64,000 nucleotides of DNA from Podarcis erhardii (lineage: Eukaryota), in NCBI GenBank assembly GCA_964252035.1, contig OZ176205.1, one strand, 5' to 3'. Numbering within the stretch: the first letter of the stretch is position 1; each line of letters starts with the position of its first letter. This document shows, one piece after another, positions 15,836 to 63,400 of the stretch. The notes under the pieces were generated by a model. That model had not been told where the DNA came from. It ran no database searches and was given only the letters and a program-made list of their open reading frames with translations. The translations under genes and the position numbers were made by a program.

Positions 15836-18213
15836 TCATATTGAAAAGGGTTTTTTGTCTTTGAAGAGAACTAAGGAAGGATAAATGTTTTTTGAAATAT
15901 TTGCTTTGCTTTGTTCTGCCTGTGAAGGCAATTCTTTATCACAATCAGCAGATGTGGGAGACAATGTAGGTTTGGAGACAGAGATTTCGGTTTTATGTGT
16001 CTTGTAAGGAAGTGAAGGCATCTCAGTTTGTTCCTCATAACTGACGTCTTTAAGCTTTGATAACAAAGGATGCTCTTGACGTGTTGCTGGTGGCATTTTA
16101 CCTTCTTTATAATCACTGCTACCTTCATCAAGTTGATTGTTTGGAGCTTCTTGCAAATCACTCTCATTATCCATATGCACCTTATTGTTCATTTCAAGAT
16201 TGATGTTGCTCTCCAGATGTGTGTTTCCAGTTTCAGGGGAAGTGGGGACGTTTGATGTGTTAGAGATAATGGTCACTTTGACAACATTTTTATGAAACGT
16301 TTTGCATTTGTTATTCTCCCACTCATTCCCAGTTTGCACTCCTTCCTCTTTTAGGCCCGCTGAGACCATGAGTGTATCTGGGATAAACATTTTCGTTGAC
16401 TCACTGTTGCTTTCTGCTTTGAAATCTGCTCTCTGGTGCTGTGATTTTGTTCCATATACTTCCATGTCATTAGTTCTAGCTGGCATTTGAAGTTGTTTGG
16501 TGGTTATACACCCAGCGGCCTGAGATTTAGAAAGTGTGCTGCTGAACTGAACTGGAGATTTGAATCTATTTATGTCCTTTTCTGTCGGAATTTGGTGTCT
16601 ACTTGATGGTGGAATTTCACCAAAGCTATGGGACTCCACAGCAACTAGATTTCTTTGTGCAGATTCAGTCTCTATAGCCCTTTTGTGCCCTTCCAATCCA
16701 TCTTCCACTGTTAAGCTTTTATATTGTTGTTTTTGGAACTGCTTCGGATTCCTACCTTGCATTATATTCTCAGCAGTTTGCTGAAACTGCATATTATCAT
16801 CTTTGGTGGCATTTTGCAAATTGAGCCCTTCTCTTTCAATAAAGAGAGCTTGAGAAAGACTGTGGTCTTTTTCCTGTGCTGCCATCATCAAAGAACTCTG
16901 GTGAAAGGCCAGGACTGCAGTTTCTGTAATATCTTCACTAAGCTCTTTAGAATTCACTGGTGCTGGAATGTTATTTGCTTCATTCTGCAAAACACTCAGT
17001 GAATGGTTGGGTGAAACAGCAATAGCTGAAACAATCATCCTTGAAGTTCCATTTGGTGAGAATAGAGATGAGCTCCTGGTGCAACTTTGAGCTTGTAAAA
17101 GCTTGGTGGGTGAAGTACCCTCAGCAATTGTCATGTGAGAAACACTCTTAGAAGGACAAGAGATGACTGTAACACCATCTGTACCATTTTCTTCAGGCAG
17201 TTTCCCAACAGATTCTCTAGAATAAATAATATCTTTGCTGCACTCTGAGATCTTTTGGGCAGCCACAGAATATTCTGATTCTGATTTTGTTTTTGTTCTC
17301 CTTCTTCTGTCTTCCCTCATGGAAGCATGTGGCAATTTTGCCTGTCGACAACTTGGGCACTGTTCTTTGTTTTCTTTGGGGAGAAGCTCTTCAGGCTGGA
17401 TTCTTGCTTTTCTAAAAGGATGTAAATTTAACTTCACAGTTAGAGAATCCCGGCTTTTAGTTTTCATTTTATGCTTCTGGATGAATCCAATCAGTTTTTC
17501 CCCAGGTCCTGCAGAGGTGGGAGATGGTTTCCTTTCTTCATTTTTTGCTCTTGAATCACAGTGCAATCTCCTTCCCAGAGCAGGGGTGAGGTTTCCTTGA
17601 ATACTCTTGCCTTGTCCTTTGTTCTCTGGGGATCTCACCCCACTTAAGCCACTTGTCACATCCACCCTCTTTATTGTTGCCAGGTCAGGTACATAAAAGC
17701 TAACACTCTTGGGCTGATACATTCTCTTGATTGCTGGCGATAACGACATCTCTTCATCAGTCATACAGGAACTGCCTGCTCTTTTGCTCTTAACTTCACT
17801 CTGTCCTTCATCCAACTTCACATTTTTGCCATGGTTCTGTTTTGTTTCTGTCGGGTAGTTGCGATATTTATCACAGCCTATGTATTTACAGATAAGGAAG
17901 TTGTCTAGCTGCGGAGAAATATTTTTGCTCCTTTCTAACGATCCACATGGATCATCCTGTCGCCATCCATGGCTTCCTAATGTTGCTTCTTTCACGCAGT
18001 GGTCCTTGGATTCCTCTGGTGTGTCAGGTGCTGATGACGAGGCTGTAATAAAATGCCTTTGCCTCAGCCTGTAAGGCTTTAAGCAGTCCTCATCCTCCTC
18101 GGTTTTGGATACAGACAGACATGACTCATTTGCTAAATGTTTTCCAAGCCCTTCTTTTGCCAAAACACACGCAGCTCTTGAATGTCTTCCACAGAATGTG
18201 TCACTTCTGATTC
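15836..18213 (-). CDS. LRRC53: LRRC53 last coding exon: about 790-aa largely disordered cytoplasmic tail
   Basis: Acceptor tgtttcacAG at 18215-18214. 2378 nt to the stop at 15836. Motifs RQRHFITASSS, NFLICKY and KLNLHPFRK.R..PE match recalled LRRC53. The spliced CDS from ATG 32557 is 3807 nt (1268 aa). Confidence 0.94.
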
Positions 18214-21049: not shown

Positions 21050-21583
21050 CTTGATTCAGTTTGTGATGGTCCTCAGATCTTGTCGCCTGTGTGTCTTCCT
21101 CCCACTGCCCAAAGTTGTCTGGGCTTCTAACTCTCCTCTGGAATTGTTTTTGGCACAGTCCATCTGCTTCATTAGGCACAGCTGCATTCCCAGAAGACTC
21201 TGGAGGATAAGACTGTAGCAGTCTACAGTTAAGGCACAAGAAATGGTCATTTTTCATCTGTTCATTCTCCTTTTGAATGCTTCTGAGTGGCATTTTTAGG
21301 CCTGTGCACTTAGACTCTGCCTTTACTGTTGCTTGATGGCTATTTTCCTTTAAAAGTGGCGTTTCCCTGCCAGACCCCAACATGGACATGACCTTTATTT
21401 CATTTTCCCGAGTTAAGTGGCAGTTACAGTATCCCTTAGTGAGGTAATTTCTTGGCTCATGACCACACTGGGATTCATCTAGGGTTCTGCAACAGCAGTT
21501 TCCTGATGAGTGTTCATTTGCTTTGCCGTGTTGAAACTTCCTGTTAAAGAGGGCTAAAACTAGGCAGGTGAGACCAACACCTC
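21050..21583 (-). CDS. LRRC53: LRRC53 exon encoding the second half of the TM helix (GVGLTCLVLALF) and the juxtamembrane Cys/His-rich cytoplasmic segment
   Basis: Acceptor ttgtcacAG at 21585-21584 and donor GTgagc at 21049. 534 nt, phase 1 to 1. GKANEH..CCRT.DE..C.HE.RNY.TKGYCNCHLT.ENEIKVMS matches recalled LRRC53. Confidence 0.95.
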
Positions 21584-25269: not shown

Positions 25270-26076
25270 CTAGAAAGGAAAAAACAGCAACCAGTGCAAC
25301 ATCTCGTCCGTAGTTCCTCCTCCTGTTTTCTAAAATACCAGGAGGGTGTTTAAGTGCAGACTTACAGTTGACCTCCGTGAGCTCAAGCAGATTGGTCACT
25401 GATGGGTTTTCAGAAGCTCTGCAACTCACATTATCAGCGTTTCTGAGCATCCTTGATGAAGAATTGACGTATTTCCTTAGAAAGGAGGCTAGGTCGTGAA
25501 GTTTGCATGTGCAGTTCCATGAGTTCTGGTCTAAGCTTAGAAGACTTAATTGAGTGAGAGAGGAAAAGGTGTCAGGAATAATGGCTAGCCTGTTCCTTGA
25601 AAGGTCAATTTCCATCAGTTGGGCGAGGCCGTGGAAGGCTCTCTTTTCAATGGAGCTAATGAAATTGTTTGACAAATCTAGGATCCTGAGTTTGCCAAGC
25701 TTTGCCATCTCAAAGCTTTCCCCTGTGATGCTCATTAGTTGATTCCCATTTAAGTGGAGTCTAATAAGATCCTTTGTGCTCATAAACCAAATTCCACGAA
25801 TGCGGCTCAAAATGTTGTTGCTTAACACTAGCACTTGCAGCTTTTGAAGTTCATGAAATGTGCTGTACGTGATAGAAGAGCTTGATATTTGGTTCTGGTC
25901 CAGAAGTAAAGTCTTCAGGGTTCTAAGTCCAAGAAAAGCATCATCTCTAATGGTTGTAATCCCATTAGCGCTGAGTCTTAGTAAAGTTGCATTGAACAGG
26001 AAGGACAGGTTAAACCCTTCTACTGAAGTGATACTTCCATCAGTAACAATCAAAGCTTTTGTGGATGCAGGAACAG
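25270..26076 (-). CDS. LRRC53: LRRC53 exon encoding the LRR array, LRRCT cap (WNCTC..C..C) and first half of the transmembrane helix (DVALVAVFSFLG)
   Basis: Acceptor tttcgtatAG at 26078-26077 and donor GTaatg at 25269. 807 nt, phase 1 to 1. LxxLxLxxNxI repeats are visible in ORF-track 25181..26053. Confidence 0.96.
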
Positions 26077-30194: not shown

Positions 30195-32469
30195 CGTAGT
30201 GTGAGTCGTTTTTTGCATATGCACCTCATTTGAGTTACTCCTTTCCTTGATGTACCTGCCTGTCATCCCGACCTTGCCTGACCCTTCCTCTGACCCATGG
30301 ACTGAACTGTAAACTTGATTTTGAAATAGTTGTACTCAGCAAATCCCACTATTGTAGATCTATCCTTTCTTATTTCTGCTTAGTTCCTACAAGGTTCTGT
30401 CCAATCTTTCTTCTGCAAAGGCCAAATGCACTTGCTCTTGAAAGCCTAATATCAATGGCCTAATATCAAAATTGGTTATGAAATGTAGCCCAGAAGTTTA
30501 ACATTACCCTTTTAAATGACTTCTGTGACTATTCAGAGATTCTTCCTAAAATAACTATGGCCTATGTGACACAATCTTGATCCTCATTAATTGAAACAAT
30601 TATATATGACTTTATATGTATCATAGCATTCCCACTTGAAATGGAATGGAATTCTTTTGACATTGCTTTTGACTACCTCCAAAGCACAACTTTGAATGAG
30701 AACACATGGGCATTGAGCAGCAAGCAAAGAAACACTCCCATTATTCCCTGGAAACCACCGACTTTCACACAGCTTTCAATTACAATGTGGTTTAATTAAA
30801 TTGGCATCAATTCTTCCACGTAGAACAGCCTTCAAAGTCAGGGAATTCATCTTGCAAAGTGGGAGCTTAATTTGTATTGATTTTGATTAGAGTTTAAAAT
30901 CATTGGGCCTCTACTATCCTCACAGCCAAATTAGCCTCTCATTAAAAGCCAAAGTAGACTCGATGGCGACTGTGGGCAAAGCACTTGCCTGTGTAAGTGT
31001 CCCATGAATCACCATCAGGTATAAATGCATTTAACACTTGAGTCGGTTTGTGTTTAGAGGAGTTAGCATGCCACTGCTAGCTACGTTGTCCAGGCCAACA
31101 GCTCTGCACACAGATAAGCTGACTCATGCGTTAAGTACATTTACACATGGTAAGGCATTTGAGGAATGTTTAACATAGGCATGCACCATCCTCCCTGTTT
31201 TCGGCCCAATATGACTTTGAAAACAGTTGTTCTGACCATGTCCTGCCTTGGTTTCATAGCCTTCCATGCTCCCCTAAGACGGCTGAGGGAGACATACAGC
31301 AAGGGGAGGGGGGGGCTGTAACCTTCCAAATGAATTTTGGTTGCAGTTCTCGCCACCCCTGATCTTGGGCCATGCTAGCTGGGACTGAAGGTAGTTTGAG
31401 TCCAACAACATCTGGAGGTCCCCATCCTTGACAGAGAGGTTGCTTGACTCAGGGACGAACCTTCAGCATCTCCTCACATGCCTTCCCAGCTTGAGGACAA
31501 GGCCTAAATACCACCTGTACCTTGAATCTCCCATTAAACACCTACTGAGTATTTAGCTACGAGCTTAATGTAGAGCCAATGCTTCAAAGCTTTTCTAGGA
31601 AGAGAGACTTTCACTGGCATTTTTGTTATGGGAGTAGGATGGCAGCAAAGGAGATCATCACAAAACCCAGGAAGTTACTGCATTTATTTACATTTGGCGT
31701 CACATTTGGGTCCCTTAATTTTTTCTTCCTCATATGCCAAATGGGAACAGTATAGCCAGGGAAAAGGATTATTGGTTTTGTGGGTCATTTTATATTATTT
31801 TAATAACTATTAGGTTAGGGTTTTTTTTTCTGCTGATGGCAATAAGCAAATTTTCCTTTCCTAAGAATCAGCAGTACTTTGCTTTAAATTTGTTAATCAG
31901 GTGTCTTATTAAATTGTTGACTTAAACAAGCAATACATAATGAACACAGGCATTGTATCTTGTTAGCATTTCCACAGCTCATTTAACTCCAAGAGAAGAA
32001 AAAGCATACTTTCTTTCAGAATTATAATGCACTTTATGATGCTAATCTGTATCATTGGTACATCACTTAATCTTGCTAATGCTGAAGGGTTCCTTGGCAG
32101 GGTTAGAAGGCAATTGATAGCTCATTCAGCCAGTGGACAGCTTGAACTTTGCACAAAATGTGGATAAAACTTATTAAAATGATCTATTTTGTTTTTCTTA
32201 AAGCGTTTGGCTGAGTGAAATGACTCTGTTCTCGGTAACAAAGGTTTTCAATTACCTCTGAAGGGCTTGGAATAGTTTGGATAAGGCCTCTAGGCAAAGA
32301 GAAATGAAACAATGCTATCACTCTCCAGTCAAAATGTGAAAGGCTAGCTCTCTGAAAGTTTACCTCGCAGCAGCAGGCACAAGAAGCAGTCAATACAATT
32401 ACAGCTGTGCTGTGTGAGCTTACAGTATAGAATAAATATCAGTTCTCTGTAAGTGTCTTACTTAGTTAC

Positions 32470-32583
32470 CTAGTATATATGTTAATCCTTGACACAGAGT
32501 AATATCTTCAGAGCATACCACGCAGGAAGGAGGGCAGGATGCGGTTAACTGAATCATCATAGCAAGCAGACTGAGCAATGCAC
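32470..32583 (-). CDS. LRRC53: LRRC53 exon encoding (G)ALLSLLAMMIQLTASCPPSCVVCSEDITLCQGLTYIL(A): signal-peptide-like stretch plus LRRNT cysteine cap
   Basis: Minus-strand acceptor tttttcgtcccttttAG at 32585-32584 and donor GTaact at 32469. ATG at 32557 aligns with the recalled annotated human start MLRLVAACPESCVVC and gives 88 coding nt; the frame is open for the 26 nt upstream of it. Confidence 0.9.
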
Positions 32584-32660
32584 CTAAAAGGGACGAAAAA
32601 AGGGCACATGTACATATATCTGTATACACACACATGCACACATATCTTGGCCCTGACTTT

Positions 32661-32752
32661 TTAATATTGTTATTCATGACTTAATTGTAATTAAGCAGTG
32701 AACCCATTAATATTGTTATTCATGACTTAATTGTAATTAAGCAGTGAACCCA
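32661..32752. repeat. Exact 46-bp tandem duplication
   Basis: TTAATATTGTTATTCATGACTTAATTGTAATTAAGCAGTGAACCCA at 32661-32706 and 32707-32752. Confidence 0.97.
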
Positions 32753-33372
32753 TCACTTTTCAAAGAATCACACTTGTTTAAAAGTCAGAATTGTGATTCT
32801 TCCATTTTTGTTTTCATTTATAAGAAACACATTTAGCACCCTGTCTAATTTGGCCCTTAAATGAGTCTGTGTTTGGGACGCTTTGTAAGCATCATACATG
32901 CTGCTTAAGTTGTTACAAGTGATAGCTTCACTTTAGGGGGGCGGGTTGAGGTGCTGGATCCCTAAACCTTGAAGCTGTAATTTCATCCATCTGAGAAGGT
33001 CCTCTTTTCAAAGAGTTGTGGGAGGCAAGGAAAAGACACAGAATGGTAAGAAATGGAATGGTAAGAAAGCATTCAGTATGGCTCCTACAGTTCAGCTTAG
33101 ATACCAAGTTAAGGAAGTTCATGGAGGCGAAGCTTTTTATCACAGCCCTCAGCACCTTTGTACTATGACCCTGCCCCATATTCCTTAGAGAGACTCACCA
33201 ACCCTCCAGCATGGCTGTAGGGTTCCTTAAGTTAACTTGCCTTAGGATCCAAGCCAGTACCTTTTAGAAATTGGAAGTGTATGGCTGGAAGTGCTTTTTT
33301 TTTCTATCTTCACCAAAACAGACTCAATTTTCTTTGTACTTATATTGTTGTTCTGTCCTTATATATTTGCAG

Positions 33373-33432
33373 GGAAGGCCTGAATTTTCTGAAGTGGTCT
33401 CCAAATTAGAAGAGTGCCTGTGCAATATTGAG
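33373..33432 (+). CDS. TNNI3K: TNNI3K coding exon (exon 22 equivalent): [20 protein letters not shown], end of the kinase domain
   Basis: Acceptor ttgcAG at 33371-33372 and donor GTaatg at 33433. 60 nt, phase 0 to 0, containing the subdomain XI arginine (RP). Confidence 0.97.
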
Positions 33433-36285
33433 GTAATGGCAGAACATGTCACAGTTGGTAAGCAACATGAATGCATGGTTATGAGCGAGTGTGATGATGG
33501 CTGGGCTGGTTGCTCACAGAAGGAACTCCAGAAATATTGCAAGATATGGTGCCTGGCATTCTCAAGCTGATGTGCTCCGCTGCAATCTTAGCTATGAGAT
33601 AGGAAGGAGATGCAGGAAACGAATGCCATTTAAATATTGAAGGAACAGAGACATCACACCATAAAAAAATAGAGCCTAAAGTTAGAAGTCCTCATTCATC
33701 TCCATTCATAGAAACAAGCAATGAGAGCTAAAGGTGGCATGGGGGAAACATCATTGGTCCCAAGGTATGAATTGAAGGCACACAAGATGCCCACCTTATA
33801 GGTGAGGGTCTGGACAGTGCCTGGAAGAAGGGCAGCTGGGGAACCACATGAACTCAGGCTGGGGTTCCATGATGGAAGAAAAGTGGGCTATATATGTATA
33901 AATAAATACAATTCCCATACTGTGCACAATCATATATATCTTTGTTCCCACGTCTGCTATTTAACTTCCCCTCCCCCAGCCCTCCCCTGCCACCCACCCA
34001 CCACTGAAATTTCATGTAATGTCTAATTCAGCCCTTGGCATTAGGCAGTTTTGTATGTGAAATTTTGAGTGTGCACTTCATAAGCTACAATGTCTACCTT
34101 TGGCTCCCTGGAGAAAACGGTTGCTTGTCTGTTTCCCATTTTGCCATAAAGAGAAACAATGCAGAAAACAGGTATCTGGAACCATGTTTCACTTGTCCTG
34201 CAGCATCTCTAAACCAGAGCAACCAGCTCCCATCCATGATGTCACAAAATGGGTCAAACTACCACCCTTACACTACTTGCTTTAGTTTTGCATTTTCTTC
34301 TTCTAAACTTTACAAACTGAAATGGTGCAAAGGGTAAATGTCTGCATTGATGTTATAGGGTTATTGGCAATTAGGACATGCAAGAAAAGTTTTGTAAGAG
34401 CTGAGCCTCCAGATCATACCAAAGGTCCTTGCTAAATGAGCTTACTCAACATAATGTGATTAGCAGAAGTTAATTAGCGCAAGCAAGATCAACTTTTCCT
34501 GCTTACAAGGGCTTACAGTCTAGCATTTGGGTTTAGCATACAACATCCTAATGCCTTTGCTTTCAGCATATTTTTTCAGATCAGAATGTGAATGAATCCG
34601 AATATTACTGAACTAGTTTTATTAGCTTTCATGAGGAGCATCAGACCATGTGGTTGATGGCTGTACAATGGCCACAGGTCATCCTATGTGATCTAGGGCT
34701 TCTCACTTCACCTTAGTGGCCAGAGATGATACTGCAGCAACTTCCATGACACTCACCATTAAGAAACAAGCTCTGAAGCATCCTTGAAATCCTGTCCTGG
34801 TGCTGTCTAATGCCAAATGCAAGGAATTACATTCTGAACTTGAGAGGGTCCCCTTCCCATAAGAACATTAATGTGGCATTGTGTATTATTTCAAAATGTG
34901 GTAAGCCCCAAGTGCACCACTGGTTTGGGCAAGGACTGTGGTTAAAGAAAAATCATGCCCAAAGGTTCACTGCTCTCCAATGCTCTAAGTTTTCACATGT
35001 CCAAGGGCTGTACCCTGCAGTTTAAAAACAAATTCTGGGGCTTCTTCCTGCCAATCCTTTCCTTGCTTTGAGTCCTGTGGCTTCATCCCTCAGAAAAGGT
35101 AAATTTCACAGTGTTGAAGGGAGAAAATACCACATCAAGTATTTTCTAAAGCAATCAGCTGAGTCAATGGAACTTAACTTCAGTCTATGGCTAAAAAAAA
35201 TATCCCAGTCCTTTTGGCTTTCAACCGAGAGGATAGCTGATGAAATAGACGACATGCTTGATCTTGGCAACCAGGGTTGCACATGTGGGGAAAGTTCCCC
35301 ATTTCCTTTCCCCTCCTATCAAAGTATATCATCACTCTTGAGCCAAAGGGTCAGAGCAGTGACTCCCATCATCTATTTCATTTTTCAAGCTCCAGCTGCA
35401 GCATGATACATTGTGTGTAGGTGGAAGTGCCTCTAAGAAAGTGTGTGTGTACATGTGTGTTTTGTTTTGTTGACAGCCTGAAGCAGTATATCACAAGTAA
35501 CTGTGCTGTCTCAGAGGAGACCTAGCTAGCTCCTGTGATACATAGTCAGCAGTTTATATGAGATTAAATCTGGGGTGTGAGCCCATGTAAGCTTCAGAAA
35601 GAAGAGCAATACTTAGCTGGCTAAAACACATCGCGTGCATCATCAGAGCAACAGAGTGGTGAAGTGTGAAGGAGCAAGTGCTGTCATAAAGGGAGGCTAA
35701 CATTTTAGGATCTTTGTTGGCCACATGAAATAAGATGTGAAGATACTCTCTGGGCTTGTTCAAACCAGAACAAATTGTTGATTTGCACCTGCCTGTTTCC
35801 TCATTAATGTAAGAAAACCTTCTAGAAGTTGTTGAACTAAAACTCCCGCCATCCCTGAACATTGTCTATGCTAGCTGGGGCTGATGGGAGCTGGAATAAC
35901 ACCTTAGGGTCCTAGGAGCAACGTTTGCCACATGGCACAGCTGTGGTGGGTCCGGGGAGGCTGCCATCTTCCAGTGGGGTTGGAGGATAGTTGAAGGGTC
36001 TCTCTTTGGCCAACCCTTGGAACAGCATATACATGCGAGAGTACATGTTCAGTCCCCTGAACAGAAAACATAACAGAATGCTTTGTACAGGCGACAATGA
36101 TTAGCATCCTCTTGGCAACAATTTCTGAAACCTAACATGTTGAGAGCAGTAGAAATAGCTGGGGACTGGAGCAAAGTTACTTGTGAGATACTGCATATGG
36201 TGAGTTCTGCTGCTGTCAGCTTTTCTGGCAAGATTTCACAGTTCTCATAAGTGGGTATTGACAGTGTTCTCTCTGTTCATTCCAG

Positions 36286-36455
36286 CTGATGTCACCAGCC
36301 TCTAGCAACAGCAGTGGTTCTCTTTCTCCTTCCTCTTCCTCGGATTGCCTGGTTGCTCGAGGATGCCCTGGGCGCAGCCATGTTGCTGCTTTACGAAGCC
36401 GTTTTGAGCTGGAATATGCCTTGAATGCAAGAACTTATGCTGTCTGGTCACAAAG
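36286..36455 (+). CDS. TNNI3K: TNNI3K coding exon (exon 23 equivalent): [56 protein letters not shown](S), Ser-rich tail
   Basis: Acceptor ttccAG at 36284-36285 and donor GTaaga at 36456. 170 nt, phase 0 to 2. Confidence 0.97.
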
Positions 36456-36469
36456 GTAAGAATGCAAAT

Positions 36470-36524
36470 GGAAGGAAGGAAGGAAGGAAGGAAGGAAGGA
36501 AGGAAGGAAGGAAGGAAGGAAGGA
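36470..36524. repeat. (GGAA)n microsatellite, about 13 units
   Basis: Read directly; begins 15 nt into the intron following TNNI3K exon 36286-36455. Confidence 0.97.
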
Positions 36525-38812
36525 TCCTTCCTTGGCCCATGGGGTTCTAAGAGTTGCCTGGTACTTAAATAATCGGCTGTTTGGACAACTACTAGCACCT
36601 AGTAGAAATGTCACCTGAAAGCAACACAGAAAGAAAACTAGTCTCTTTATTTCTTGGAGGAGACAAAAACACAACCTGTGTGCTTCAGCATCTTAAGTGT
36701 CACTCTGGCAACACAATCTACAACAGCACTAGAAAAATGTGTAGTTGATTATTTCCCGAACTTAGTTCTAAAAGTCCTGGTAAAATGGTTTGTAAGGTTT
36801 TCAGAAGTATAACGGATCTTTGGGGTTGGGGAGCCCCAAAGGGTTGGACCCGAAAAACAGCTTAGTGAAGAATGAGCATGTTCAGTAGGCACCAAATGCT
36901 GGCTAAGTATTAGAGGGAAGTAAAAAGAAAACCAGGGGAAATGGAATGGAGTGGCAGGAAACCCAAATAGCAGTACTCCATACAAATAGCAATACTCCAC
37001 ACTCCTTTGGTTAAATGTTCCACTTGCACCCTTCCAATGCTCACCAGTTAAAAGAAAGATCAACAAGAGTGAGCTGGAAACAAGCAGGTTATGGAAATGT
37101 TAGAAGGATCTTATACCACATTCCTCCTTTTTGCTTCAGCATATAATAGATTTGCATGAAAAGAATGAGCGAGTGACACATTTAGGTTACACTATAGATA
37201 CCCAAGAGGGCGAGAAAAGTAGTTATCACAGCAGCCTCCCTGCTACTGTAATTTAATGTTCATCTCAGTGCGCCACCCAAGCTCATTAGCTTGCTGAAAT
37301 GGGTTCCTGTATAACCCAAAGGGTTACAGAACAGTTTCCCCCCTCAAATTCTGTGCAATACAAATTAACTAACTCCAGTCCTATAAATAGAACATTAAAA
37401 GAGTCGCCCAGAGGCAAAATGTAAAGTAAAATGAAGATGGTTTCTGCAGATTCAGTGTTTTTTTCAATTATACAACACACTGGGATGATTAATGACCTAG
37501 CTTTCTAATGACAATAGTTTCTTGAGGGTTTAATTTTTTAAAACATACAAATTGAGAGAGGGATTCTGCGCTATGTGCTAACATCCATTGCAGTGCATTT
37601 TTTCCACCCCCTCCACCCCCATTTTAGCTACCCAAAGTAGCAAGGTACACACACACATCTACTTTTGCCTTCTCACCCACACACAAAGTTAAGGAGGCAT
37701 GAAATTACCTGCTCAATGCTCGCCTTGTAAATGCAGTCCTTTCTGTTCATAACGCTACAGTGTTCCAAAGAATGCTGTGGGAACTTAAGCTGGGGATGAA
37801 AGCTTGGCTCAGAATCTAGAGAGAGAGCAGCTTTTGGTGTGTACAAGACCTTTCGGCATGCACATAATGGCAGCTAGTGACCATTGGAAAGGCAGAGAGG
37901 CCAGGAGCCAATGACAGGTAGAGCCAATGTATTTCAAGATTTGCACACCCAGGTTTTTCAACTTCCAACAATTCTTCATGCAGTCATAGGCTGCTTTTGG
38001 TCTAAATGTCCCCTCTTCACACTAGTCTCCTTTGTAAGGAAACTCAGAATGACTGGGCCTAACAAGTTGTAGCATTCCCTCCCCAGAGAGGCGTGCCTGG
38101 CATCTTCATTATGCAGTTTCTGCTGTAGGCAGAAGAAACACCTCTGACACTTGAGATATACAGGCAATTCCCCATTTGCACAGGCTGTGTGTGTGTTCTG
38201 AGTCATTGTGCGTGTCCGCAGTCAAATGTCAGCCCATTCCACTCCTTCCAGGACCGAAAACTATGTGTGCGTCAGCAGTCGTGTGTCAATCAGGCATGTT
38301 CAGAATGGTCCCACCCTATTCTTGCGACTGTCAATTGTTTTAAACTGTATTTTAATACTGTATTAAAAAAATTTGTAATCTATTTTAGGACCTTATACTG
38401 AAAGGTGGGTAATAATTTAAACAGCAACAACAATAATTAGGAGGAGCAGTTGCTCATGGAGCAACAGGATAATTCACTGAGCTGATTCGGTTTTGCTCAA
38501 GCAGGAAATTTCAGAACCGGACTTTTATATCCTCTTGCTGATGACTAAAGTGGGAAGGATTTGGGGGGGGGAATGTTTGGAGACCTAAACAGGGGTTAAA
38601 CAAGGCTTCATTTCACTTGAGTCAGAAACCCAGTTTGGCACCTCCTCCACATGCATTTGTATGTGCGCGCACACACACACACACACACACACAGGCTGGC
38701 ACCCCTCTGGAGGCTTCACCTGGGGCTTCACCCTGGCTAACTGCCCCATAGCTATTGCTCTGCCTAAAACATTTTGTCCTTTTTAACATATCTAGAAGAA
38801 TGAAATTTGCAT

Positions 38813-39290
38813 CATAAGAACACAGGATCAGCCCTGCTGGATCAGGCCCATCTAGTCCAGCACCCAGTTCTCATTGTTGCTCACCAGATGCCCCTGGGGA
38901 CAAGCAGAACCTGAGCATCATAGAAGCAACCAGTATCCTAGGCCGAATGCCTCTGGCAGTGGAGGGAGAACACAGCCATTCTGGCTAGTAGCTACTGATA
39001 GCCTTGTCCTCCATGAATTTGCCTACTCCTCTCTTAAAGCCATCCAAACTGGGGGCCATTATCCCTACCTCTTGTGAGAGCGAATTCCATCGTTTAGCTT
39101 CACACTGTGTGAATAAGTGCTTTCCTTTGTCCTGAATCTTGTAGCCTTTTTCTGCTTCATTACATGGCATGGCCCTAATATTATGAGTGGGGGAGGGCAA
39201 ACTTTTCTCTCTCTACTTTCTCCACACCTTCCATGGTTGTGTACACCTCTTATTCACCTTTTCTCTAAGCTAAAAAGTTGTAATCTCTTC
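38813..39290 (-). mobile_element. CR1 LINE 3' end
   Basis: ORF-track 38985..39200 gives KHLFTQCEAKRWNSLSQEVGIMAPSLDGFKRGVGKFMEDKAISSY*, the CR1 ORF2 C-terminus. The 3' UTR ends ..ttcttatg. Confidence 0.9.
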
Positions 39291-40339
39291 GGGGATCTGC
39301 ACTCTGCATCCAAAGGTGGAAAGACAGGCTTTCCGCAGGCTGTCTGCCCTTTGCTGACAGTGGCCAGTCATAGTATGCAGTCATGCTAAATGTTTAACTT
39401 CCTGTCACTTGGATAACTGATTGAGTTGCCCTTTTGGTTTCATGGTTTTATGTGCGAGCAGGGATAGATTAATGAGCTCCACCACAGAAAAATATTTGAG
39501 AAGTAAGTGAAGCTGATGACACGTTACTTTACAGTTTAGCGGAATTCAACAAATCTGATTCTATTATCCTGTCAAGTTCCGCAAAAGAGACCTTGAAAGC
39601 ATAAAAAAAGAAGAAAAGAGAGAGAATCTTTAATCGAACCCAGAAGCTATGAATGCAGCTATGGAGTTCAGCTGTGTTAGCTGGTGACAGACCTTTGTTT
39701 TCTTCCCCATCTTGTGAAGTAAATAATATCCCCAAAGACTAATTAAGTTTCTGCAAAGTCCTGTCTTAGTAACACAGCTCCTTTCTGCTCTTTGAGAAGA
39801 GTGTCAGTGTCCTGGAATCATGGCTAATGATTTTTTTTTTTTTTAAAAAAAATACATATATATTTTCAAAAGACTCTTCAAGGTTTATGCAAGCAAATTC
39901 ACTGAAGGCAGACCAAGTGGAGGGAGGGGGGGTCTGTTTTCAAAAGCACAGAACTCAAGTCAGGTTATTATTTTTTCCCTAGGACATTTAAAAACCAACA
40001 GCCACTTTTTAACCCAACTGAGTATCAGCTTTGTTCTGATAGATGTAGCCTTGCATGAATGCCTTGAAGTGTTTGGGCACAGTCACGGATCTCTTGTGTA
40101 TCTGAACACTGAACTCAACCAACTCTTTGTATAATTGGAAGAGAAAAGTAACTTGAGATAGTGTCACTTAATATCACACACACACACACACACAGACACA
40201 AACACAATTCAAAGGTTTCATTCCCCCACCCTCCATGGCTGCCACCACTGACCCAGCTCTGGAATGGTAAGTGAGAGAGCTCCAAATTCAACTACTGTCT
40301 GTGGTGGCATGACCTTAACCTTATTGTTACTCCATGAAT

Positions 40340-40469
40340 CAGGGGGTGGGGAACCTGTGGTACGCTGGATGTTCCTGGACCACACAAATCCCATCATCCT
40401 TGAACACTGGCCATGCTTAGTGGGGCTGCTGGGAGCAACAGCTAGAGAACCACAGGTTCCCTATCCCTA
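40340..40469. mobile_element. hAT-type MITE (130 bp) with a perfect 8-bp TSD CCATGAAT
   Basis: TIR CAGGGGGTGGGGAACCTGTGG / CCACAGGTTCCCTATCCCTA. TSD at 40332-40339 and 40470-40477. Confidence 0.85.
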
Positions 40470-43108
40470 CCATGAATGAATGAGTGGGCCTCCTTACCTT
40501 AAGGCACACCCTTTCCATATAACCCCCTAACCAGTTAGATCAGTACTAGGGGACCCTGCTCTTTGTTTCTTCCACCACCACCTGAGGTGAGCACTTGAGA
40601 TGCCTAGAGGCAGGTGAGCAGTTGAGCTTCCAGGATTGTGGAATGCTTTCCTGAGGGAAGGCTTGCATCACCTCCATTAGTGGTCCACCATTCCATATCC
40701 CACACTATCCCTCAAGGTCCCATGGGTTTTGAGGAGCAGATGTTCAGTGGGTGCAGGGAGCTGTGGAGGGAAGGGTGAGGCTGGAGAAACTCCATTCTGC
40801 AAACATGCATGGTAGTGTTTGGCCCCTCTGGCTTGCCATACCAGGATTTGTCTGTGTCAGCTCTTGGGCATGGTGAGTTGCTTCGTCTGCTGTGAGCAGC
40901 GTGGGCTTGCAGCGTGGCTTTTCCCTCCATAACCTTTCATATTTAAGTTGTGTTTGCTACATGTATCCTCTGTGTGGCCTTCTGTTCCACTCACAGAGTT
41001 AAAATTAGGATCCAAGTAATGGATTGTATAGTAATTGCTTTCAGAGGAGCTTGCAAGCAAGGATTATGACCTAAGTCACTGCTGAAACTTGGCATAGTGG
41101 TTAATCAAAGGCACCCAATTGCTAGAAAGGTCTGAAAAGGGCCTGTTCTACATCTTTCCCTCAAAAATAAGTGCATGAAACCTTTTCCCAGGGCCATGGT
41201 TCCATGACTTGCTTTCTCTACAGTTTTTATAGCTTTGCTGTGTTCCTTCTTACACAACTTTTTAACCTGGGAAAAGAATCTCGAGCTCATAATTCTTTGA
41301 TTAGCTCTCAGCTATCATGCTGCAAATGCGCAGGAACATCAGCCTCTTTCACAGAGTATCCATGTTGCACAGCCTGTCTGATAAAACCTTTGCAGTCTGC
41401 TGTTATGCTCCTAAGTGCTCAGCAAGACTTTTTTTTTCTGGGTAGCCCAGTTTCCTCTTAATTTTAATTATTGCAAAAGTACCAAGCATTGTTGATCTAA
41501 AAAAAGAACAACCATGCCATCTTTCAGACCTTAAGCAAATGTGAGGGGGACGGGGGGGGGGGAGAATCAAGAAGGCCACAGCAGAGAAGTTGTCCCAGAT
41601 TTGCACTGATGCTCTCTTTGAAATTGCACGGCACATACACCTCTCCGCCGGCAGCCTCATGCAATAATACAGCAGGCTCGCTAATCATCTTGCTGCTGTT
41701 TTGGTTTTTTTTCCCCAAGCCTTGGAGCCATGGCCAGTGGCTCAGTGCTAATGAGAGGAATCTGGGTATGATCTTTGCATCCTCCACAGGTGTGTCTCTG
41801 AGACAGAGCGCAACAGGCACACAGGTGAAGGGAGCTGCACTCCCCCCCCCCAGCCCAACACACAGATTATCCTATGGCTTTACAAGGACAGGAGACGGGA
41901 GGGATGTTTCTGAGCACAAGACTGAGAGAGAGAGAGACTTAAAAATGCTGCATGAAGGTCTTTAATGAACCATGAGAAGCCAATAACCACTGAAAGGCAG
42001 TGGGGCTCGAGAGCCCCAAGAAGCTTGTCTAGCAGCGGGGAGACTAGTCTGCAGCTGCTCAGCTTTAGGGGCTGCCGCCTGCACTTTCAACAAGCCAGAC
42101 TCCAAATGAGGCAGCTGTTCCAAGCAGGTATAAATAAAAGATGTGGTGTTCCTATGGGAACCTTTGGCATATTGGATTACCTATTCCCCAGCTAGAGTTT
42201 CCTTTCAGTTAAGTTTCTGTGCGAAAATCCTACACTTCAGGGTGTGCTTTTAAGAGACGGATTGTGGAGTTGTTTATTTCTGACTGTATATTCGTGGCCC
42301 TGATAATCTTTCTGCCCTTGGAAGTACCCATTTGGTTATGGGGCCCAGAGCTGCAAAGCTGACCATTCCCCAGGCCTCCTAAGCAAGCTGTGTAAAGTCA
42401 GGTAGGCAATATTTATCCCACACTGAAAGATGAAAATAAAAGTGAATTGCTGCCACAGGGAATCTGGAGTGCCTGCCACCTGGTTCTCACCTTTAATAAG
42501 GAGGGAAACATCAAAAGTCAGCCATCTACATGGTTATACCTCTTTGTCCATCTATCTCAGTACTGCCTACTCGGACTTGCAGCAGCTCTCCAGAATCTCT
42601 GGCAAATGCATTCCACATCACAGGTACCTAATCTTCCCAGAAGTGGGCTTCCTACATGTGGTTTCTTGGTCACACTACAGGAAGACAAAGTGATGGCATA
42701 CAGGAAGCAGTACATCTATAAACACACATGTTCATATTCCTTAAATCTTCGTGATAACTGCCAGAATGTCTTCCTGGCAAGCCACTCATTTCAGGATTCC
42801 CATTGCATGTTTACTGGGTTGGATCCAGACATTGCTTTCCAGGGCTAGAATGGATGCATCCACAGGAGGCTTCTGATCCAGTGGTGGGTGGAGATCTCGC
42901 CAATAGCGGAGGAAGTGATTTTTGACGATTCCCCCTCAGCTCTCTGGAACAGTGTGAGAGGGGGCAGGGGAAGCATTAAAAGTTGCTTCTACACTTCCAC
43001 TAGCAGGAAAGTCCTGAGTGGAGCTCTTAATACAGGATGCTCCCACCAGTGGTAGCCAAGCCTGAGCCCAACCATTTTTAAGGCAACTTGGGCTGTGGAA
43101 ATGTGTCA

Positions 43109-43449
43109 GCTGTGGGTGAAACCACAGAGCCTAGGACTTGCCAATCAGAAGATTGGTGGTTCGAATCCCCACAACGGGGTGAGCTCCCGTTGCTCGGTCC
43201 CTGCTCCTGCCAACCTAGCAGTTCAAAAGCACGTCAAAGTGCAAGTAGATAAATAGGTACCGCTCCGGCGGGAAGGTAAATGGCATTTCTGTGTGCTGCT
43301 CTGGTTCGCCAGAAGCGGCTTAGTCATGCTGGCCACATGACCCGGAAGCTGTACGCCGTCTCCCTCAGCCAGTAAAGCGAGATGAGCGCTGCAACCCCAG
43401 AGTCGGTCACAACTGGACCTAATGGTCAGGGCTACCTTTACCTTTACCT
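43109..43449 (+). mobile_element. Sauria SINE, near full length
   Basis: ctgtgggtgaaaccacagagcctaggacttgccaatcagaag..ggttcgaatcccc..gagctcccgttgctcggtccctgctcctgccaacctagcagttc..(ACCTTT)n tail. Confidence 0.95.
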
Positions 43450-45685
43450 ATATTTTACACACACACACAAAAGTAAGTGAGGTAGAAGCACCAAGCAGCT
43501 GCTGATGTTTCTTCTTTCCCCCACATCTCACTGGCTCTTGGACAACACTGTGAATAAGTTAGCAGAATCCCAAACCAATCAGGTCAGTCATCCATATTAA
43601 GATTACAAGAGAAGCCAGCATGGCTTGATGCTCTGAGTTCTGAGCACATACCAGTTTCCCACCTTCTGATGTAGCAGAATTTGTTGAACAAATTATTTGC
43701 ATGCATTTCCTTGGATGGCACTCCTGTAGGAAAAAATCCAGTATATTTGCCCTAACAAAAATGAAGATCTTTTTTTAAAAAAAGTATCACAGACATGTTT
43801 GTCTTCTACGTGTTATGATTGAATGTGTGAATGCTTCTTTCTGTCCTTTTACCTGGCATTTGCCCGCCTTTGCCTGCCTTGATATAATAGATGCATCTGG
43901 AAGCTCTACACCTTAGTCATATTCTCCATTCTTCCCAGTTTATCAGCAATCTAAGATGGCAGTTCAAACAGTGTTGCTAAATGGTGCCCCTGCAAAGCAA
44001 TAGCCTGACCCAGAAATCATGAAGTGTTTGTGTGTATAGAGTTTGAGGCAATGTCTTATATCTGACAGCCACGTTGACTAATATTAATGCTGGGTTGATG
44101 GTGAGCTCTGCGTTTGACCTTGGCCCCCATTAGATTTTGTTGCTTGAGCACAGTTTAGGAACCATACATTAGTTTTCATTTAGGTAAATGTGGAGCTGGA
44201 TTAGTGACAGAGGCACTCCACATAGCATGAATGAATAAATGGATTGAATTAGGCTAATAAATGAAGAAGCCATTTCAATTCAGCAGGGACCCTGCAGCTC
44301 TAACAATGTGGATCTCCTCTTCCACTAGCCACAGAGTAGAGTTGCAGGTTATACATTACATGGATAGGGAGCAACTTGTGTCTCACATTGCATTGTATGG
44401 GCATTTGGTTTCAGGGTTATAAATAGGACTGGGATTAAAGCAGAATGCCTTCTCTGAACAATCATAGTATTAAGAATCATGGGGTGGAATTCAGCATTGC
44501 AGTGTGATGAATGTTCCATCTGTGCAAACATATCAGCTTGCCGGATGAAAGAATCCCCTCTCCCTGCATGCTGTTCTAGGGCTCTCCCAACCCTCCCCCC
44601 CATTACCAAATGAGGGGGGGCATGTGGTGAGGAGAGGAGAAGGTTCCATTGCGCAAGTGGAAACCCTTGCACAGGGTTTTCCCTGGCAGTGTTCAGTAGG
44701 CAAATCCCACCCATGCTATACAGGAAGCCCACAATTTATGCACATTTAACATGTGCACGTTCAGCTTTACCACTTTTTGGGGGGGGGGGGGAATTAGAAA
44801 GATGCAGTGGAAAGCAGTAAGTGTCCAGGAAAAAAGACTTTGGCAATCCCACCCACCATTGCACCCAATGTGTTTTGGCTTTAGGCATGATCCCAGGAAC
44901 GTAACCCCCATGTAAGTTGAGGGCTTACTATATTTCGGAACACTCTGCTTTGAAATAGCGATCCATTTGTTGGTGAATGTTGCTAGCTAGTTAAATGGCT
45001 TTTGTGGCCAGAATTTAAAGAAGAGTGTATTTGAGCTTCTCCCGCTCAAAACCACAGTCTGCCACGCAGTGCAGCAAGTAGATTTTTGCTGTTTTAAACA
45101 GGTTTCAATCCATCTATTCATTAATCAATCAATCCTACTGAGTGCACACAAAACATCAGACTTGCCCGAACTGGCTCCTTGGATCCAATTAATAACCCTT
45201 ACTTTAATTCTCAGCATTGTCATCGCTCTCCAGATAGCTAGATGGACAGACAGACAGACAGACAGTATTGCAAACTGTAATTCGAGTATAATATTCTAAC
45301 CAAGGTAAATATAGGGATGGGTGAAAGTGTTGAGACATTTATGAAGGCAACATGGTCAGTTTTCCATAGCAACTGCTTTGATGAGACTTGGAGGGGAGTA
45401 TTATGAAGGAGGAAATGTCATTGTATTTGGGCAATGATACCATGTAAAGGGGGAAAAAGGCACATTTTAGCAAGACTATATAGGTGCTATTAGAGTCTGC
45501 TAAAATGAGAGGAAAAGGGGAAAATATCAACACTGCAAATCCATACAGGCTCCACAGTTACAGGTATATTTACTGGCAGCAAGTCCTATGTGTACTTCCA
45601 GGAAGGTACATTTAGGAACAAAGCTTCCATTTTTTCACTGGGGAAAGGGGAAAAAATCTGCCAAACCAATATATAAATTTCTTAC

Positions 45686-45692
45686 CTGCCAT
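45686..45692 (-). CDS. LRRC53: Candidate LRRC53 first coding micro-segment ATG GCA G (M-A-G), phase 1
   Basis: The minus strand reads ttc TAA ctg ATG GCA G|GTAAGA: an in-frame stop just upstream, G at +4, and a consensus donor at 45685. The phase matches the acceptor at 32584. Confidence 0.5.
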
Positions 45693-46379
45693 CAGTTAGA
45701 AATTGCCCTTGTCAAAATCACCAAGGAAGGTACATTGCTGGGAATAATCCTTTCAGCTTGTCCTTTCAGCCACAACTTGACAACAAATTCTTTGAAGCTC
45801 TTGTTTTTTGAAAGAACCTCAGATAACTGCATACCTTACCATGAACAAGTAGAGACATATTGTTATGAATCCTCTGGATATTAATGTGCAGTTTGAGGCG
45901 TTAATTCACACTCTCTGGGCGTACTCAGTATCTGCTAGCCCATCATTTGAGAACAGCTGGTACAGGCAGTCTTTATCTGATTGCTTCCAAGGATAAAGGA
46001 ACATATTTTCTGTGAGCAACATTTGGATTTGCGTCTGAAGGGTGATGTTCTCTTTCACAAAGGAATTAGCATGCACGAACCTGATAGTACTGGGGTAGAT
46101 ACATTATTTATGGTATATTGGAATTGTCACCTAGAATTGTTCTTCAGGTCGAAAGCATTGTAGAACAAAACTCAAAATTCTGAGAAGAAGTTGTTCTGCA
46201 AATGTATTCCTTCTCCATCCATGTTATTTTTCTTCCTGTGCAATTGCTTCTTCTAAAAAGCCGGTTGTGTTTTCCGCTGGTGTTTTTTTTAAAGGATGTT
46301 GTTTCTGTAGAAAAGCTCTAATATTACAAAGATAACATATTCAGTCATCTATAATGAAGACATCCTGTCGATTTTACAG

Positions 46380-51553: not shown

Positions 51554-52139
51554 CATAGGAAGCTGCTTCACACTGAGTCAGGCCACTGGTCCATCTAGTT
51601 TGGTATTGTCTACACTGACCGGCAGCAGATCTCCAGCACTTCCTATGGGGGGGTATTTCCCAGCCCTATGGAAGTGAGAGCTGGACCATAAAGAAGGCTG
51701 ATCGCCGAAGAATTGATGCTTTTGAATTATGGTGCTGGAGGAGACTCTTGAGAGTCCCATGGACTGCAAGAAGATCAAACCTATCCATTCTGAAGGAAAT
51801 CAGCTCTGAGTGCTCACTGGAAGGACAGATCCTGAAGCTGAGACTCCAGTACTTTGGCCACCTCATGAGAAGAGAAGACTCCCTGGAAAAGACCCTGGTG
51901 TTGGGAAAGATGGAGGGCACAAGGAGAAGGGGACGACAGAGGACGAGATGGTTGGATAGTGTTCTCGAAGCTACCAGCATGAGTTTGACTAAACTGCGGG
52001 AGGCAATGGAAGACAGAAGTGCTTGGCGTGCTCTGGTCCATGGGGTCACCAAGAGTCAGACACGACTAAACGACTAAACAACAACAACCAGGAGATTCTA
52101 GGGGTTGAACCTAGAACCTTCTCCAAAGTAGAAGAATGC
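51554..52139 (-). mobile_element. Squam3-type SINE split by a BovB insertion
   Basis: cataggaagctgcttcacactgagtcaggccactggtccatctag..cagccctat, resuming after BovB as caggagattctaggggttgaacctagaaccttc (reverse complement of the tRNA head). Confidence 0.75.
51667..52088 (+). mobile_element. RTE-BovB LINE, 5'-truncated 3' end with (CAA)n tail
   Basis: RVPWTARRSNLSILKEISSECSLEGQILKLRLQYFGHLMRREDSLEKTLVLGKMEGTRRRGRQRTRWLDSV..WRALVHGVTKSQTRLND* is the BovB ORF C-terminus, and the frame is intact here. Confidence 0.95.
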
Positions 52140-60473: not shown

Positions 60474-63400
60474 TTAGTCAGATGTTCGAGAAGATTCTAG
60501 GCTGATCATTTGCAATGTGAAGTTTACTGGCGGCTGTCCTTCAGGCTGTTGTGCATTGCTGGGAACAATTTCTTTCACCGGCAGATTTTCTTCTGGAGAC
60601 TCTTCCTCTCCTGTTCTCCTCTGTTCGTTTCTATATTTTTCCTCCACAGGCTCTTCAGTACCTGCTTCCATGGCTTTGTCGCTCTGAGCACCCCATGTTT
60701 TTCTTTTTACTACAGCTGCAAAAACTTCTTTCCTCCCAGCCTCCTCCTTGTGAGACAGCATTTGAGTCTCTTCTACTGAAACTTCCCCCTCAAGTTCTTT
60801 AGGCTCTTCTTCCTCTTCCTCCTCCACTTCTTCGCTCATAAACGATACTTGTTCTATCAACTTCTGCATCCCTGCCAACAGAGCTTCCTCCACATCTCGC
60901 AGCGTTATCATTGGTTCTCCTGTGTAATATGCCTCCTCTTCCTTCTCTACTTCATCGCTTGCATCTTCTACCTGCACCTCCAGGTCAGGTGACATTTTCC
61001 CGGCCACAGTCTCTTTTGGTGTTTTTTCCACTTCATCTTGGAAGCTGACTTTACTGCCCATTCCTCCTTCTGCTAATGCTGCTTTTTGTGTGAATGGCTC
61101 GGATAGGTGTGATGCCTCTGTCACGCCAGCTATCCTTGGGGTTCCTGTGATGGTCATCCCATGGGCTATTTCATTCTCATGTGCCATGGACAGAGACCCC
61201 CTTTCTCTCTCTTTCCCTGAAACTTCAGCCTCTGTCCTCCTTCTAATTGCCACCTTTCTCCCTGCCTTTGTCTCTTCAAAATCCACTTCTCCTTCTCCTT
61301 CTGCCCCTGTCTTCCTTCTTCCTACTCTTTGTTTCTGTTTAGGTGCTGCCACTCCAGATCCCAGAATCACTTCTGTCCCTCCCTCTTCAACTTCCTCACC
61401 CTCCTCTTCAATTAGATCCTCTTCCTCCACTGCACCTTCTGCACTGGCCACCACACCTTCAAGTGTTGCTCTTCTTCCAGCCCTTCTTTCTGAACTTGTC
61501 TTGACACCTGACCTCTCTGCCTTTCGTATTACTCTTGCTTCCTGGGCTGTCGTATGTTCATCTTCTGCTGCTGAAATGACCCCCTCAGCGTCGCTCTCTG
61601 ACAAGGGTTTGCCCACCTCAGATTCCAGTTTCTGTCCAGCTGAACCTTCATCTCTAGATATTCTTTTCTTCTCTTGTTGATACATTTTCCTTCCAGACCT
61701 TCTTTCTGAACTTGGCTTGACCACTGACCTATCTGCCTTTCGTATTGTTCTTGCTTCCTGGGGTGTTGTATCTTCATCTTCTGCTCCTGAAATGACCTCC
61801 TCAGCCTCACTCTCTGATAAGGGTTCACCTTCCCGAGGTTCTAGTTCCTCTTGAGCTGAACCTTCGTCTCTAGATATTCTTTTCTTCTTTCTCACTTCTA
61901 CGTGTGTTTTCCTTCCAGCCTTTCTTTCTGAACTTGGCTTGACTGCTGACCTCTCTGTCTTTCGTATTATTCTTGCTTCCTGGGCTGTCGTATCCTCATC
62001 TTCTGCTCCTGAAACGACTCCCTCAGCCTCACTCTCCGACAAGGGTTCACCTTCCCAAGGTTCTAGTTCCTCTTGAGCTGAACCTTCATCTCTAGATATT
62101 CTTTTCTTCTTTCCCACTTCTACGTGTTTTTTCCTTCCAGCCTTTCTTTCTGAACTCGGCTTCACTGCTGACCTCTCTGTCTTTCGTATTATTCTTGCTT
62201 CCTGGGCTGTCGTATCCTCATCTTCTGCTCCTGAAACGACTCCCTCAGCCTCACTCTCCGACAAGGGTTCACCTTCCCAAGGTTCTAGTTCCTCTTGAGC
62301 TGAACCTTCATCTCTAGATATTCTTTTCTTCTCTCTCACTTCTAAGTGTGGTTTTCTTCCAGCCCTTCTTTCTGAACTCGGCTTGACTGCTGACCTCTCT
62401 GCCTTTCGTATTACTCTTGCTTCCTGGGCTGTCGTATCTTCATCTTCTGCTCCAGAAATGGCCTCCTCAGCCTCAATGTCCGACAAGGGTTCATCCACCT
62501 CAGATTCCAGTTTCTGTCCAGCTGCACCTTCGTCTCTAGATATTCTTTTCTTCTCTTGTTGATACATTTTCTTTCCAGACCTTCTTTCTGAACTTGGCTT
62601 GACTGCTGACCTATCTGCCTTTCGTATTGTTCTTGCTTCCTGGGCTGTCGTATACTCATCTTCTGCTGCTGAAACAACTGCCTCACCCTCAGTGTCCAAC
62701 AAGGGTTCACTTTCCAAAGGTTCTGGTTCCTCTTGAGCTGAATCTTCATCTCTAGATATTCTTTTCTTCTTTCTCACTTCTACGTGTGTTTTCCTTCCAG
62801 CCCTTCTTTCTGAACTCGGCTTGACTGCTGACCTCTCTGCCTTTCGTATAGTTCTTGCTTCCTGGGCTGTCATGTCTTCATCTTCTGCTCCTGAAATGAC
62901 CCCCTCAGCCTCACTCTCTGTCAAGGGTTCACCTTCCCAAGGTTCTAGTTCCTCTTTAGCTGAACCTTCATCTCTAGATATTCTTTTTCTCTCTCTCACT
63001 TCTAAGTGTGTTTTCCTTCCAGCCCTTCTTTCTGAACTCGGCTTGACTGCTGACCTCTCTGCCTTTCGTATAGTTCTTGCTTCCTGGGCTGTCATGTCTT
63101 CATCTTCTGCTCCTGAAATGACCCCCTCAGCCTCACTCTCTGTCAAGGGTTCACCTTCCCAAGGTTCTAGTTCCTCTTGAGCTGAACCTTCATCTCTAGA
63201 TATTCTTTTCTTCTCTCTCACTTCTAAGTGTGGTTTTCTTCCAGCCCTTCTTTCTGAACTTGGCTTGACCGCTGACCTATCTGCCTTTCGTATTACTCTT
63301 GCTTCCTGGGCTGTCGTATCTTCATCTTCTGCTCCTGAAATGACCCCCTCAGCCTCACTCTCTGATAAGGATTCACCTTCCCAAGGTTCTAGTTCCTCTT

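Follow-up and report, generated by a model that had tools for sequence, protein, structure and literature searches.

Where does the protein LRRC53 begin, and does it have a signal peptide? The question is raised by a stretch of 64,000 nucleotides (nt) from the lizard Podarcis erhardii (GenBank assembly GCA_964252035.1, contig OZ176205.1), hereafter called the window, whose minus strand carries this leucine-rich repeat (LRR) gene. An earlier note on this DNA had proposed that the usual LRRC53 model is truncated at its N-terminus. This proposal is now supported by the identity of the end of an upstream exon between lizard and bat, by the layout of the gene in fish, by a conserved acceptor and hydrophobic segment and by an extracellular-type fold. 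Based on this evidence, we conclude, with a probability of roughly 0.8, that the lizard LRRC53 starts at a conserved upstream exon 1, the usual model being N-terminally truncated and without a signal peptide. LRRC53 is an almost unstudied gene. The human protein is listed as ‘protein predicted’ (PMC5787479) and zebrafish lrrc53 marks mature lateral-line hair cells (bioRxiv 10.64898/2026.02.25.708020); in our literature search, LRRC53 was named only in passing and the question of its N-terminal start was not discussed.

The exon model on which the argument is built is the following (coordinates are those of the window):

45686-45692, minus strand: predicted coding part of exon 1, ATGGCAG, which encodes Met and Ala and opens a Gly codon split by the intron, joining exon 2 without a stop
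32584-45685, minus strand: predicted intron 1, 13,102 nt, phase 1, containing opposite-strand TNNI3K exon(s) and conserved non-coding blocks
32470-32583, minus strand: exon 2, 114 nt, with leader residues 3-18 and the N-terminal cap with its four cysteines; a homologous exon is present in every locus compared
25270-26076, minus strand: exon 3, with the LRR repeats, the C-terminal cap and the beginning of the membrane helix (Pfam LRR_8, E = 2.4e-36)
21050-21583, minus strand: exon 4, with the remaining membrane helix, the RKFQHGK after it and the juxtamembrane portion of the cytoplasmic region
15836-18213, minus strand: exon 5, with the long cytoplasmic tail and the stop codon (93% identity to Zootoca vivipara LRRC53)

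The minus strand around exon 1 reads TAA (45698-45696) CTG ATG (45692-45690) GCA G (45686)/GTAAGA (45685-45680), the slash marking the splice site; the placement of this motif at 45692-45686 in the earlier note is correct to the base, and the in-frame TAA closes the frame just upstream of the ATG. The acceptor of exon 2 has a long pyrimidine tract (...ttttcgtcccttttAG), with its AG at 32585-32584, and the first exon base is the G at 32583, so that exon 2 does begin at a strong acceptor 26 nt before the conventional ATG (32557), as had been claimed. Two inner ATGs lie in this exon, at 32560 and 32557 (the latter being the start of the Zootoca-type public model), and its donor is CTAG/gtaac, after 32470. 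When the five exons are spliced, 3840 nt with a single open frame are obtained, encoding 1279 amino acids (aa) that start with MAGALLSLLAMMIQLTAS followed by CPPSCVVC, which agrees with the hydrophobic leader of 18 residues before the first cap cysteine and with the protein length that had been proposed. All four introns of this spliced model are in phase 1, and at 45686/32583 a consensus donor, a consensus acceptor and continuity of the frame are found together. Within exon 2 there is also an internal GTATGC (32512-32517, minus strand), after the GTG of C-V-V-C; the Liasis olivaceus model P0007 uses its equivalent as a donor, thereby reading exon 2 out of frame.

Use of the 45686^32583 junction in the lizard, initiation at the exon 1 ATG and cleavage of the leader before Cys19 are the steps that we infer from the sequence. 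LRRC53 transcripts would start at an exon whose last seven bases are ATG GCA G (45692-45686), the 13.1-kb phase-1 intron would be removed and exon 1 would be joined to exon 2 at 32583. Translation would then yield a cleavable signal peptide of 18 residues (MAGALLSLLAMMIQLTAS), which would take the capped LRR ectodomain into the endoplasmic reticulum, so that a type I membrane protein with 1279 aa would result. Models starting at 32557 are without the first 11 residues, and would thus have no usable leader.

Such models are common. Among the 61 full-length LRRC53 models from public sources that were examined, the start lies at most eight residues before the first cysteine in 25; another 21 have extensions that disagree with one another, and 15 are without exon 2. 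The Zootoca-type public model (1268 aa) corresponds to the 1279-aa lizard protein minus its first 11 residues, and the human-type models of 1247 aa (P0110 and P0111) begin with MLRLVAACPESC, which bears out the annotated human start given in the earlier note. These conventional models (P0110; Zootoca P0001, Rhineura, Elgaria and Tiliqua) have the same exons 2-5 as our model and correspond to its protein from the inner Met on, starting seven residues before the first cysteine, so that they have no signal peptide. In the public models of Candoia, Chelonoidis, Eretmochelys and koala, tiny first exons are placed 0.4-1.6 kb upstream of exon 2, with the donors GTTGGA, GTACAG, GTATAC and GTCTCC, respectively; the two turtles disagree with each other. 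These exons were rejected as guides, given their weak donors and non-homologous positions, and the fact that each model invents a different one indicates how easily such sites are found.

Could the conventional models be right, with a start at 32560 or 32557, no cleavable leader and the upstream bases being 5' untranslated region? The number of public models starting this close to the first cysteine speaks for it, as does the weak base at position -3 of the exon 1 ATG. The region in question is the beginning of exon 2:

32561-32583, minus strand: the 23 nt that precede the first inner ATG (26 nt in the case of the conventional ATG), coding (G)ALLSLLA, the hydrophobic core of the leader

The acceptor was compared in eight species (Zootoca, Rhineura, Candoia, Liasis, Chelonoidis, koala, the bat Hipposideros and the char Salvelinus), and the pyrimidine tract, the AG/GT acceptor and the open hydrophobic segment are kept in the eight (alignment A3 included). 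The expectation that the segment before the usual ATG stays in frame and hydrophobic is thus borne out in every species compared, and from fish to mammals this segment has kept its hydrophobic coding character. The inner Met, on the other hand, is variable: one of the two positions is occupied by I or T in bat and koala, and fish have no Met there. Additionally, in an mRNA that contains exon 1, the in-frame ATG of this exon would be the first to be met. A conventional start would also leave without a leader an ectodomain of 281 residues, predicted to be glycosylated and capped by disulfides, which precedes a single membrane helix. Such an ectodomain cannot reach the lumen without a leader. Altogether, we regard a start at the inner ATGs as very unlikely.

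The properties of the leader and of the ectodomain are consistent with the exon 1 start. The leader has an uncharged, apolar run of 13 residues, with a mean Kyte-Doolittle value of about 2.6 (over 8-10 residues; a rough measure), comparable to that of the fish leaders, and the residues before Cys19 (T at -3 and S at -1) are small and neutral, at the predicted cleavage site. The short forms, starting at the inner ATGs, have 7-8 residues before the first cysteine. The ectodomain has five N-X-S/T sites and four plus four cap cysteines (C19, C23, C26 and C33; C229, C231, C259 and C278/280), which are invariant, and the membrane helix after it is followed by basic residues (RKFQHGK) and by a cytoplasmic tail of about 950 residues without known domains. 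In the AlphaFold model of the bat orthologue, which begins with the conserved Met, residues 1-17 make up a loose helix of low confidence, the confident solenoid begins at about residue 20 and the membrane helix spans residues 301-330. The best Foldseek matches of this model are the ectodomains of the Nogo receptor (1ozn, the top match), LRRTM2 (5z8y), NGL-3 and FLRT2, with E = 4e-12 to 1e-8 and a TM-score of about 0.6. Judged by this predicted structure, the LRRC53 ectodomain is a capped extracellular LRR fold like that of the Nogo receptor.

A start that is simpler than a far-upstream exon would be reached by read-through, with transcription beginning just upstream of exon 2, the acceptor at 32584 unused and translation starting at ATG 32677, which would give an N-terminus of 47 residues:

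32584-32677, minus strand: read-through stretch between ATG 32677 and the acceptor, equivalent to the start of P0042, a public model of Podarcis muralis

The frame is indeed open from ATG 32677 into exon 2, P0042 is built in this way with a nearly identical N-terminal peptide, and Zootoca, koala and Rhineura have some in-frame ATG upstream of the acceptor. However, these ATGs lie at different places, and in five of the eight species (Candoia, Liasis, Chelonoidis, Hipposideros and Salvelinus) there is no ATG before a stop, so that read-through cannot be a general solution. Moreover, the acceptor is conserved in all species, the stretch consists of a pyrimidine tract and TG/TA-rich simple sequence, as is typical of an intron end, and the 29-residue, cysteine-rich segment that would be added is unlike the leaders of the fish orthologues. 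A read-through start is thus, in our view, quite unlikely. The TG/TA-rich simple sequence itself spans 32608-32647, just upstream of the exon 2 acceptor.

For the far-upstream exon, the comparison with the bat Hipposideros larvatus is central:

45678-45697, minus strand: conserved block AACTGATGGCAG/GTAAGAAA, with the start-codon context, the seven coding bases and the donor, 20 of 20 identical to bat L006:3038-3057

Four isoforms of LRRC53 are annotated in this bat. One of them, T2 (P0021, KAM5270636.1), starts with MQLPHEFDESKCELMAG and runs on into exon 2 (...CELMAG/GWLILF...); its first exon ends at L006:3049 (...GAACTGATGGCAG/gtaagaaagg), 49 kb upstream of exon 2, with a phase 1 join. The identity between lizard and bat falls exactly at the donor of this first exon, and drops to about 50% in the flanks of the block. 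The 20-nt block occurs once in the window even when three mismatches are allowed, with 0 occurrences expected by chance. When the upstream regions of the lizard (27.8 kb) and the bat (52.2 kb) were compared with blastn at E <= 0.05, only six matches were obtained, all on the same strand and strictly colinear (45.69 kb in the lizard to 3.04 kb in the bat, 42.1 to 15.3, 39.5 to 23.4, 37.2 to 30.2, 36.4 to 42.0 and 33.4 to 45.1), with the exon 1 block as the outermost of them (E = 0.008). The predicted human isoform X1 (P0035) starts with MQLPQEFNKSKCKLMT, matching the bat MQLPHEFDESKCELMAG, and from the likeness of the two proteins it clearly appears to carry the same first exon; the human exon would then end in ATG ACA G, as deduced from the protein.

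The other colinear blocks of lizard and bat in intron 1 lie at 42068-42208, 39388-39603, 37143-37191 and 36268-36460, and some of these conserved blocks may be plus-strand exons of TNNI3K.

Since TNNI3K spans the region on the other strand, the 20-nt identity could be thought to reflect a constraint that has nothing to do with LRRC53, for example a splice element of TNNI3K (on the plus strand, the block reads like a pyrimidine tract followed by CAG), and the reverse complement of the block does resemble an acceptor. Against this, tblastx finds no coding conservation beside the block on either strand, the would-be plus-strand exon reads LEIALVKITKE in the lizard and FTFTFIEFM in the bat, which is not expected of the conserved TNNI3K, and in the bat the block falls precisely on the end of an annotated LRRC53 exon. 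With no coding conservation in any frame beside the block, a TNNI3K exon was rejected as the cause of the identity, and an unrelated constraint of this kind seems to us scarcely credible.

A further alternative keeps an upstream start and moves it to another exon, for instance near the 42.1-kb block, the 45.69-kb exon being a minor or non-coding variant. Exon 2 of the bat is joined to at least two alternative first exons, and the block 42208-42068, conserved with the bat, adjoins one of them (T1, L006:15389-15475). Public models, too, put tiny first exons at many different spots, and donors with an ATG at hand are not rare: when donors were scored with an approximate vertebrate consensus matrix, five of the 11 donors scoring at least 5 bits had an in-frame ATG. 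On the other side, the ATG and the donor of bat T1 are not kept in the lizard (stops interrupt the aligned stretch, and GTCTCT replaces the donor), and the tiny first exons of the public models have weak donors and are not homologous even between the two turtles. As only the 45.69-kb site is conserved, we consider another lizard start exon unlikely. By the same scoring, the CAG/GTAAGA donor of exon 1 ranks third among the 1381 GT sites of the 27.9 kb that separate exon 2 from the upstream gene, and in this stretch it is the sole donor at its score level with an in-frame ATG within eight codons.

The fish provide a view of the same start across a much shorter intron. In lrrc53 of Salvelinus alpinus (P0074), ATGAGAA/gtatgt is followed by a phase-1 intron of 217 nt and then by cccag/GTGTTCTC...; the spliced frame, continuing across cccag/GTGTTCTCCTG..., encodes MRS/VLLMLMLSITHTQSLSS before CPASCVVC. 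The leader thus begins MRS/VLLMLML..., with 20 residues before CPASC, and the exon 2 of 120 nt begins with GT and ends in phase 1, with the same phases as in the lizard. An upstream exon ending in ATG-(NNN)n-N/GT, which the earlier note had suggested looking for in orthologues, is therefore found both in bat T2 and in Salvelinus. Other non-amniote models begin with MKS, MRG, MMG or MMC, followed by the hydrophobic core; their residue 3 is always G, S or C, as would be expected from a split NGT codon if the intron is at the same position. Judging from these sequences, the exon 1 layout is probably ancestral. A broader statement, that LRRC53 of bony vertebrates started ancestrally at an ATG-NNN-N first exon and universally does so to this day, and that the reference for human and most amniotes (MLRLVAAC...) is a truncated artefact without a signal peptide, appears to us somewhat better than an even bet.

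Several observations count against the exon 1 start, and have to be weighed with the above. First, the pattern is not rare by itself: 18% of 300 dinucleotide shuffles of the upstream 27.8 kb yield an equally strong donor with an in-frame ATG at most eight codons away and no stop, so that the warning that a donor plus an ATG may arise by chance holds, and the case rests on conservation rather than on the pattern. Second, the start context of exon 1 has C at -3, though G at +4, and some ribosomes may therefore scan past it. Third, there is no K or R in the first three residues of the leader (MAG), that is, no positively charged n-region; a basic residue is common in signal peptides, and not obligatory. 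Fourth, Pfam LRRNT gives no match at E <= 1 on the lizard, fish or bat N-termini. As this profile does not score, the label LRRNT rests on the cysteine pattern and on the fold; of the LRRNT cysteines that had been claimed, the four-cysteine cap and the capped-LRR fold stand, and the Pfam match is absent. Fifth, the bat has the further first exon T1, and a predicted human isoform joins exon 1 to exon 3, skipping exon 2. Finally, in Rhineura, Eretmochelys and Candoia the 10-11 kb preceding exon 2 gave no match to the exon 1 motif; these stretches are also without the other anchors, and hence probably do not reach far enough. The comparison of the Zootoca locus extended 10 kb, that is, to the equivalent of window position 40448. 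A region search with the bat N-terminus retrieved only the bat itself, and a search of a representative sequence library for transcript-derived fragments with the long N-terminus gave none from lacertids.

As for the identity of the gene, exon 5, the large last exon, is 93% identical to that of Zootoca vivipara LRRC53, with further matches down to marsupials, and a profile search with LRRC53 retrieves LRRC53 from mammals to fish, as expected of an orthologue. The gene is nested antisense in TNNI3K, and the same nesting is seen in all amniote loci examined; in every orthologous locus fetched, an ankyrin-kinase gene (Ank+Pkinase, 835 aa) lies opposite the LRRC53 strand. The remaining features of the window are as follows:

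33286-33435, plus strand: TNNI3K exon, end of the kinase domain, matching the solved TNNI3K kinase (PDB 4yff, E = 1e-6)
60474-63953, minus strand: open reading frame (ORF) of 1159 aa with glutamate-rich repeats of about 74 residues each, upstream of LRRC53 on the same strand
51748-52077, plus strand: ORF ending in ...DRSAWRALVHGVTKSQTRLND

A Pfam search of the 60474-63953 ORF gave no match; we take it to be, probably, the last exon of ERICH3. The 51748-52077 ORF appears to resemble the tail of a BovB/RTE-type retrotransposon protein. Directly downstream of exon 2, in intron 2, there is also a strikingly conserved non-coding block of 600-700 nt (31787-32469, minus strand). Its identity is 91% with Rhineura and 89% with Candoia; with turtles it amounts to 75-77%, with the bat to 77% across 313 nt and with koala to 83% across 120 nt (core 31886-32001). 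With stops in all six frames, it looks like an enhancer-type element.

What would an exon 1 start of LRRC53 change? Expressing the reference ORF would give a protein unable to enter the secretory pathway, whereas the true start would fix the predicted topology, with the LRR domain outside and the long tail inside, and would allow correct constructs for expressing or localising the protein. If the broader statement for bony vertebrates is also true, complementary DNA clones, antibodies and topology annotations built on the short reference would be wrong, and the extra upstream ATG and the alternative first exons of mammals could yield leader-less isoforms as well. The exon is already annotated in the bat model and, by protein similarity, in the predicted human isoform, and the layout is correctly annotated in fish. 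What is new here is the recognition of the conserved ATG-GCA-G exon as the shared start of LRRC53, which is an annotation correction of a known kind and not new biology; the case shows how far-upstream first exons with few coding bases defeat gene predictors.

When the lizard gene is set beside its relatives, the layout is the same and the dimensions differ. In bat T2, the end of the first exon (CTGATGGCAG/GTAAGAAA) is identical to that of the lizard, and gives MAG, a hydrophobic core and the first cap cysteine; intron 1 is 49 kb long in the bat and 13 kb in the lizard, and in mammals the frame stays open for 14 codons further upstream, up to another ATG (MQLP...), whereas in the lizard a TAA lies directly before CTG ATG. 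Fish lrrc53 (Salvelinus P0074 and Denticeps P0075) likewise has seven coding bases in exon 1, a phase-1 intron and an exon 2 beginning with GT, but the intron has only 217 nt, the leader has a basic residue (MRS or MKS) and exon 2 is longer by 6 nt.

A signal peptide split by a phase-1 intron, with its first codons (here two and a third) on a far-upstream exon, is an arrangement well known from extracellular proteins. The Nogo receptor, LRRTM2, NGL-3 and FLRT2 are secretory-pathway proteins with cleaved leaders, and share with LRRC53 an N-terminal cap, about nine LRRs and a C-terminal cap. LRRC53 differs from these receptors in its sequence, with only 22-28% identity, and in its long cytoplasmic tail.

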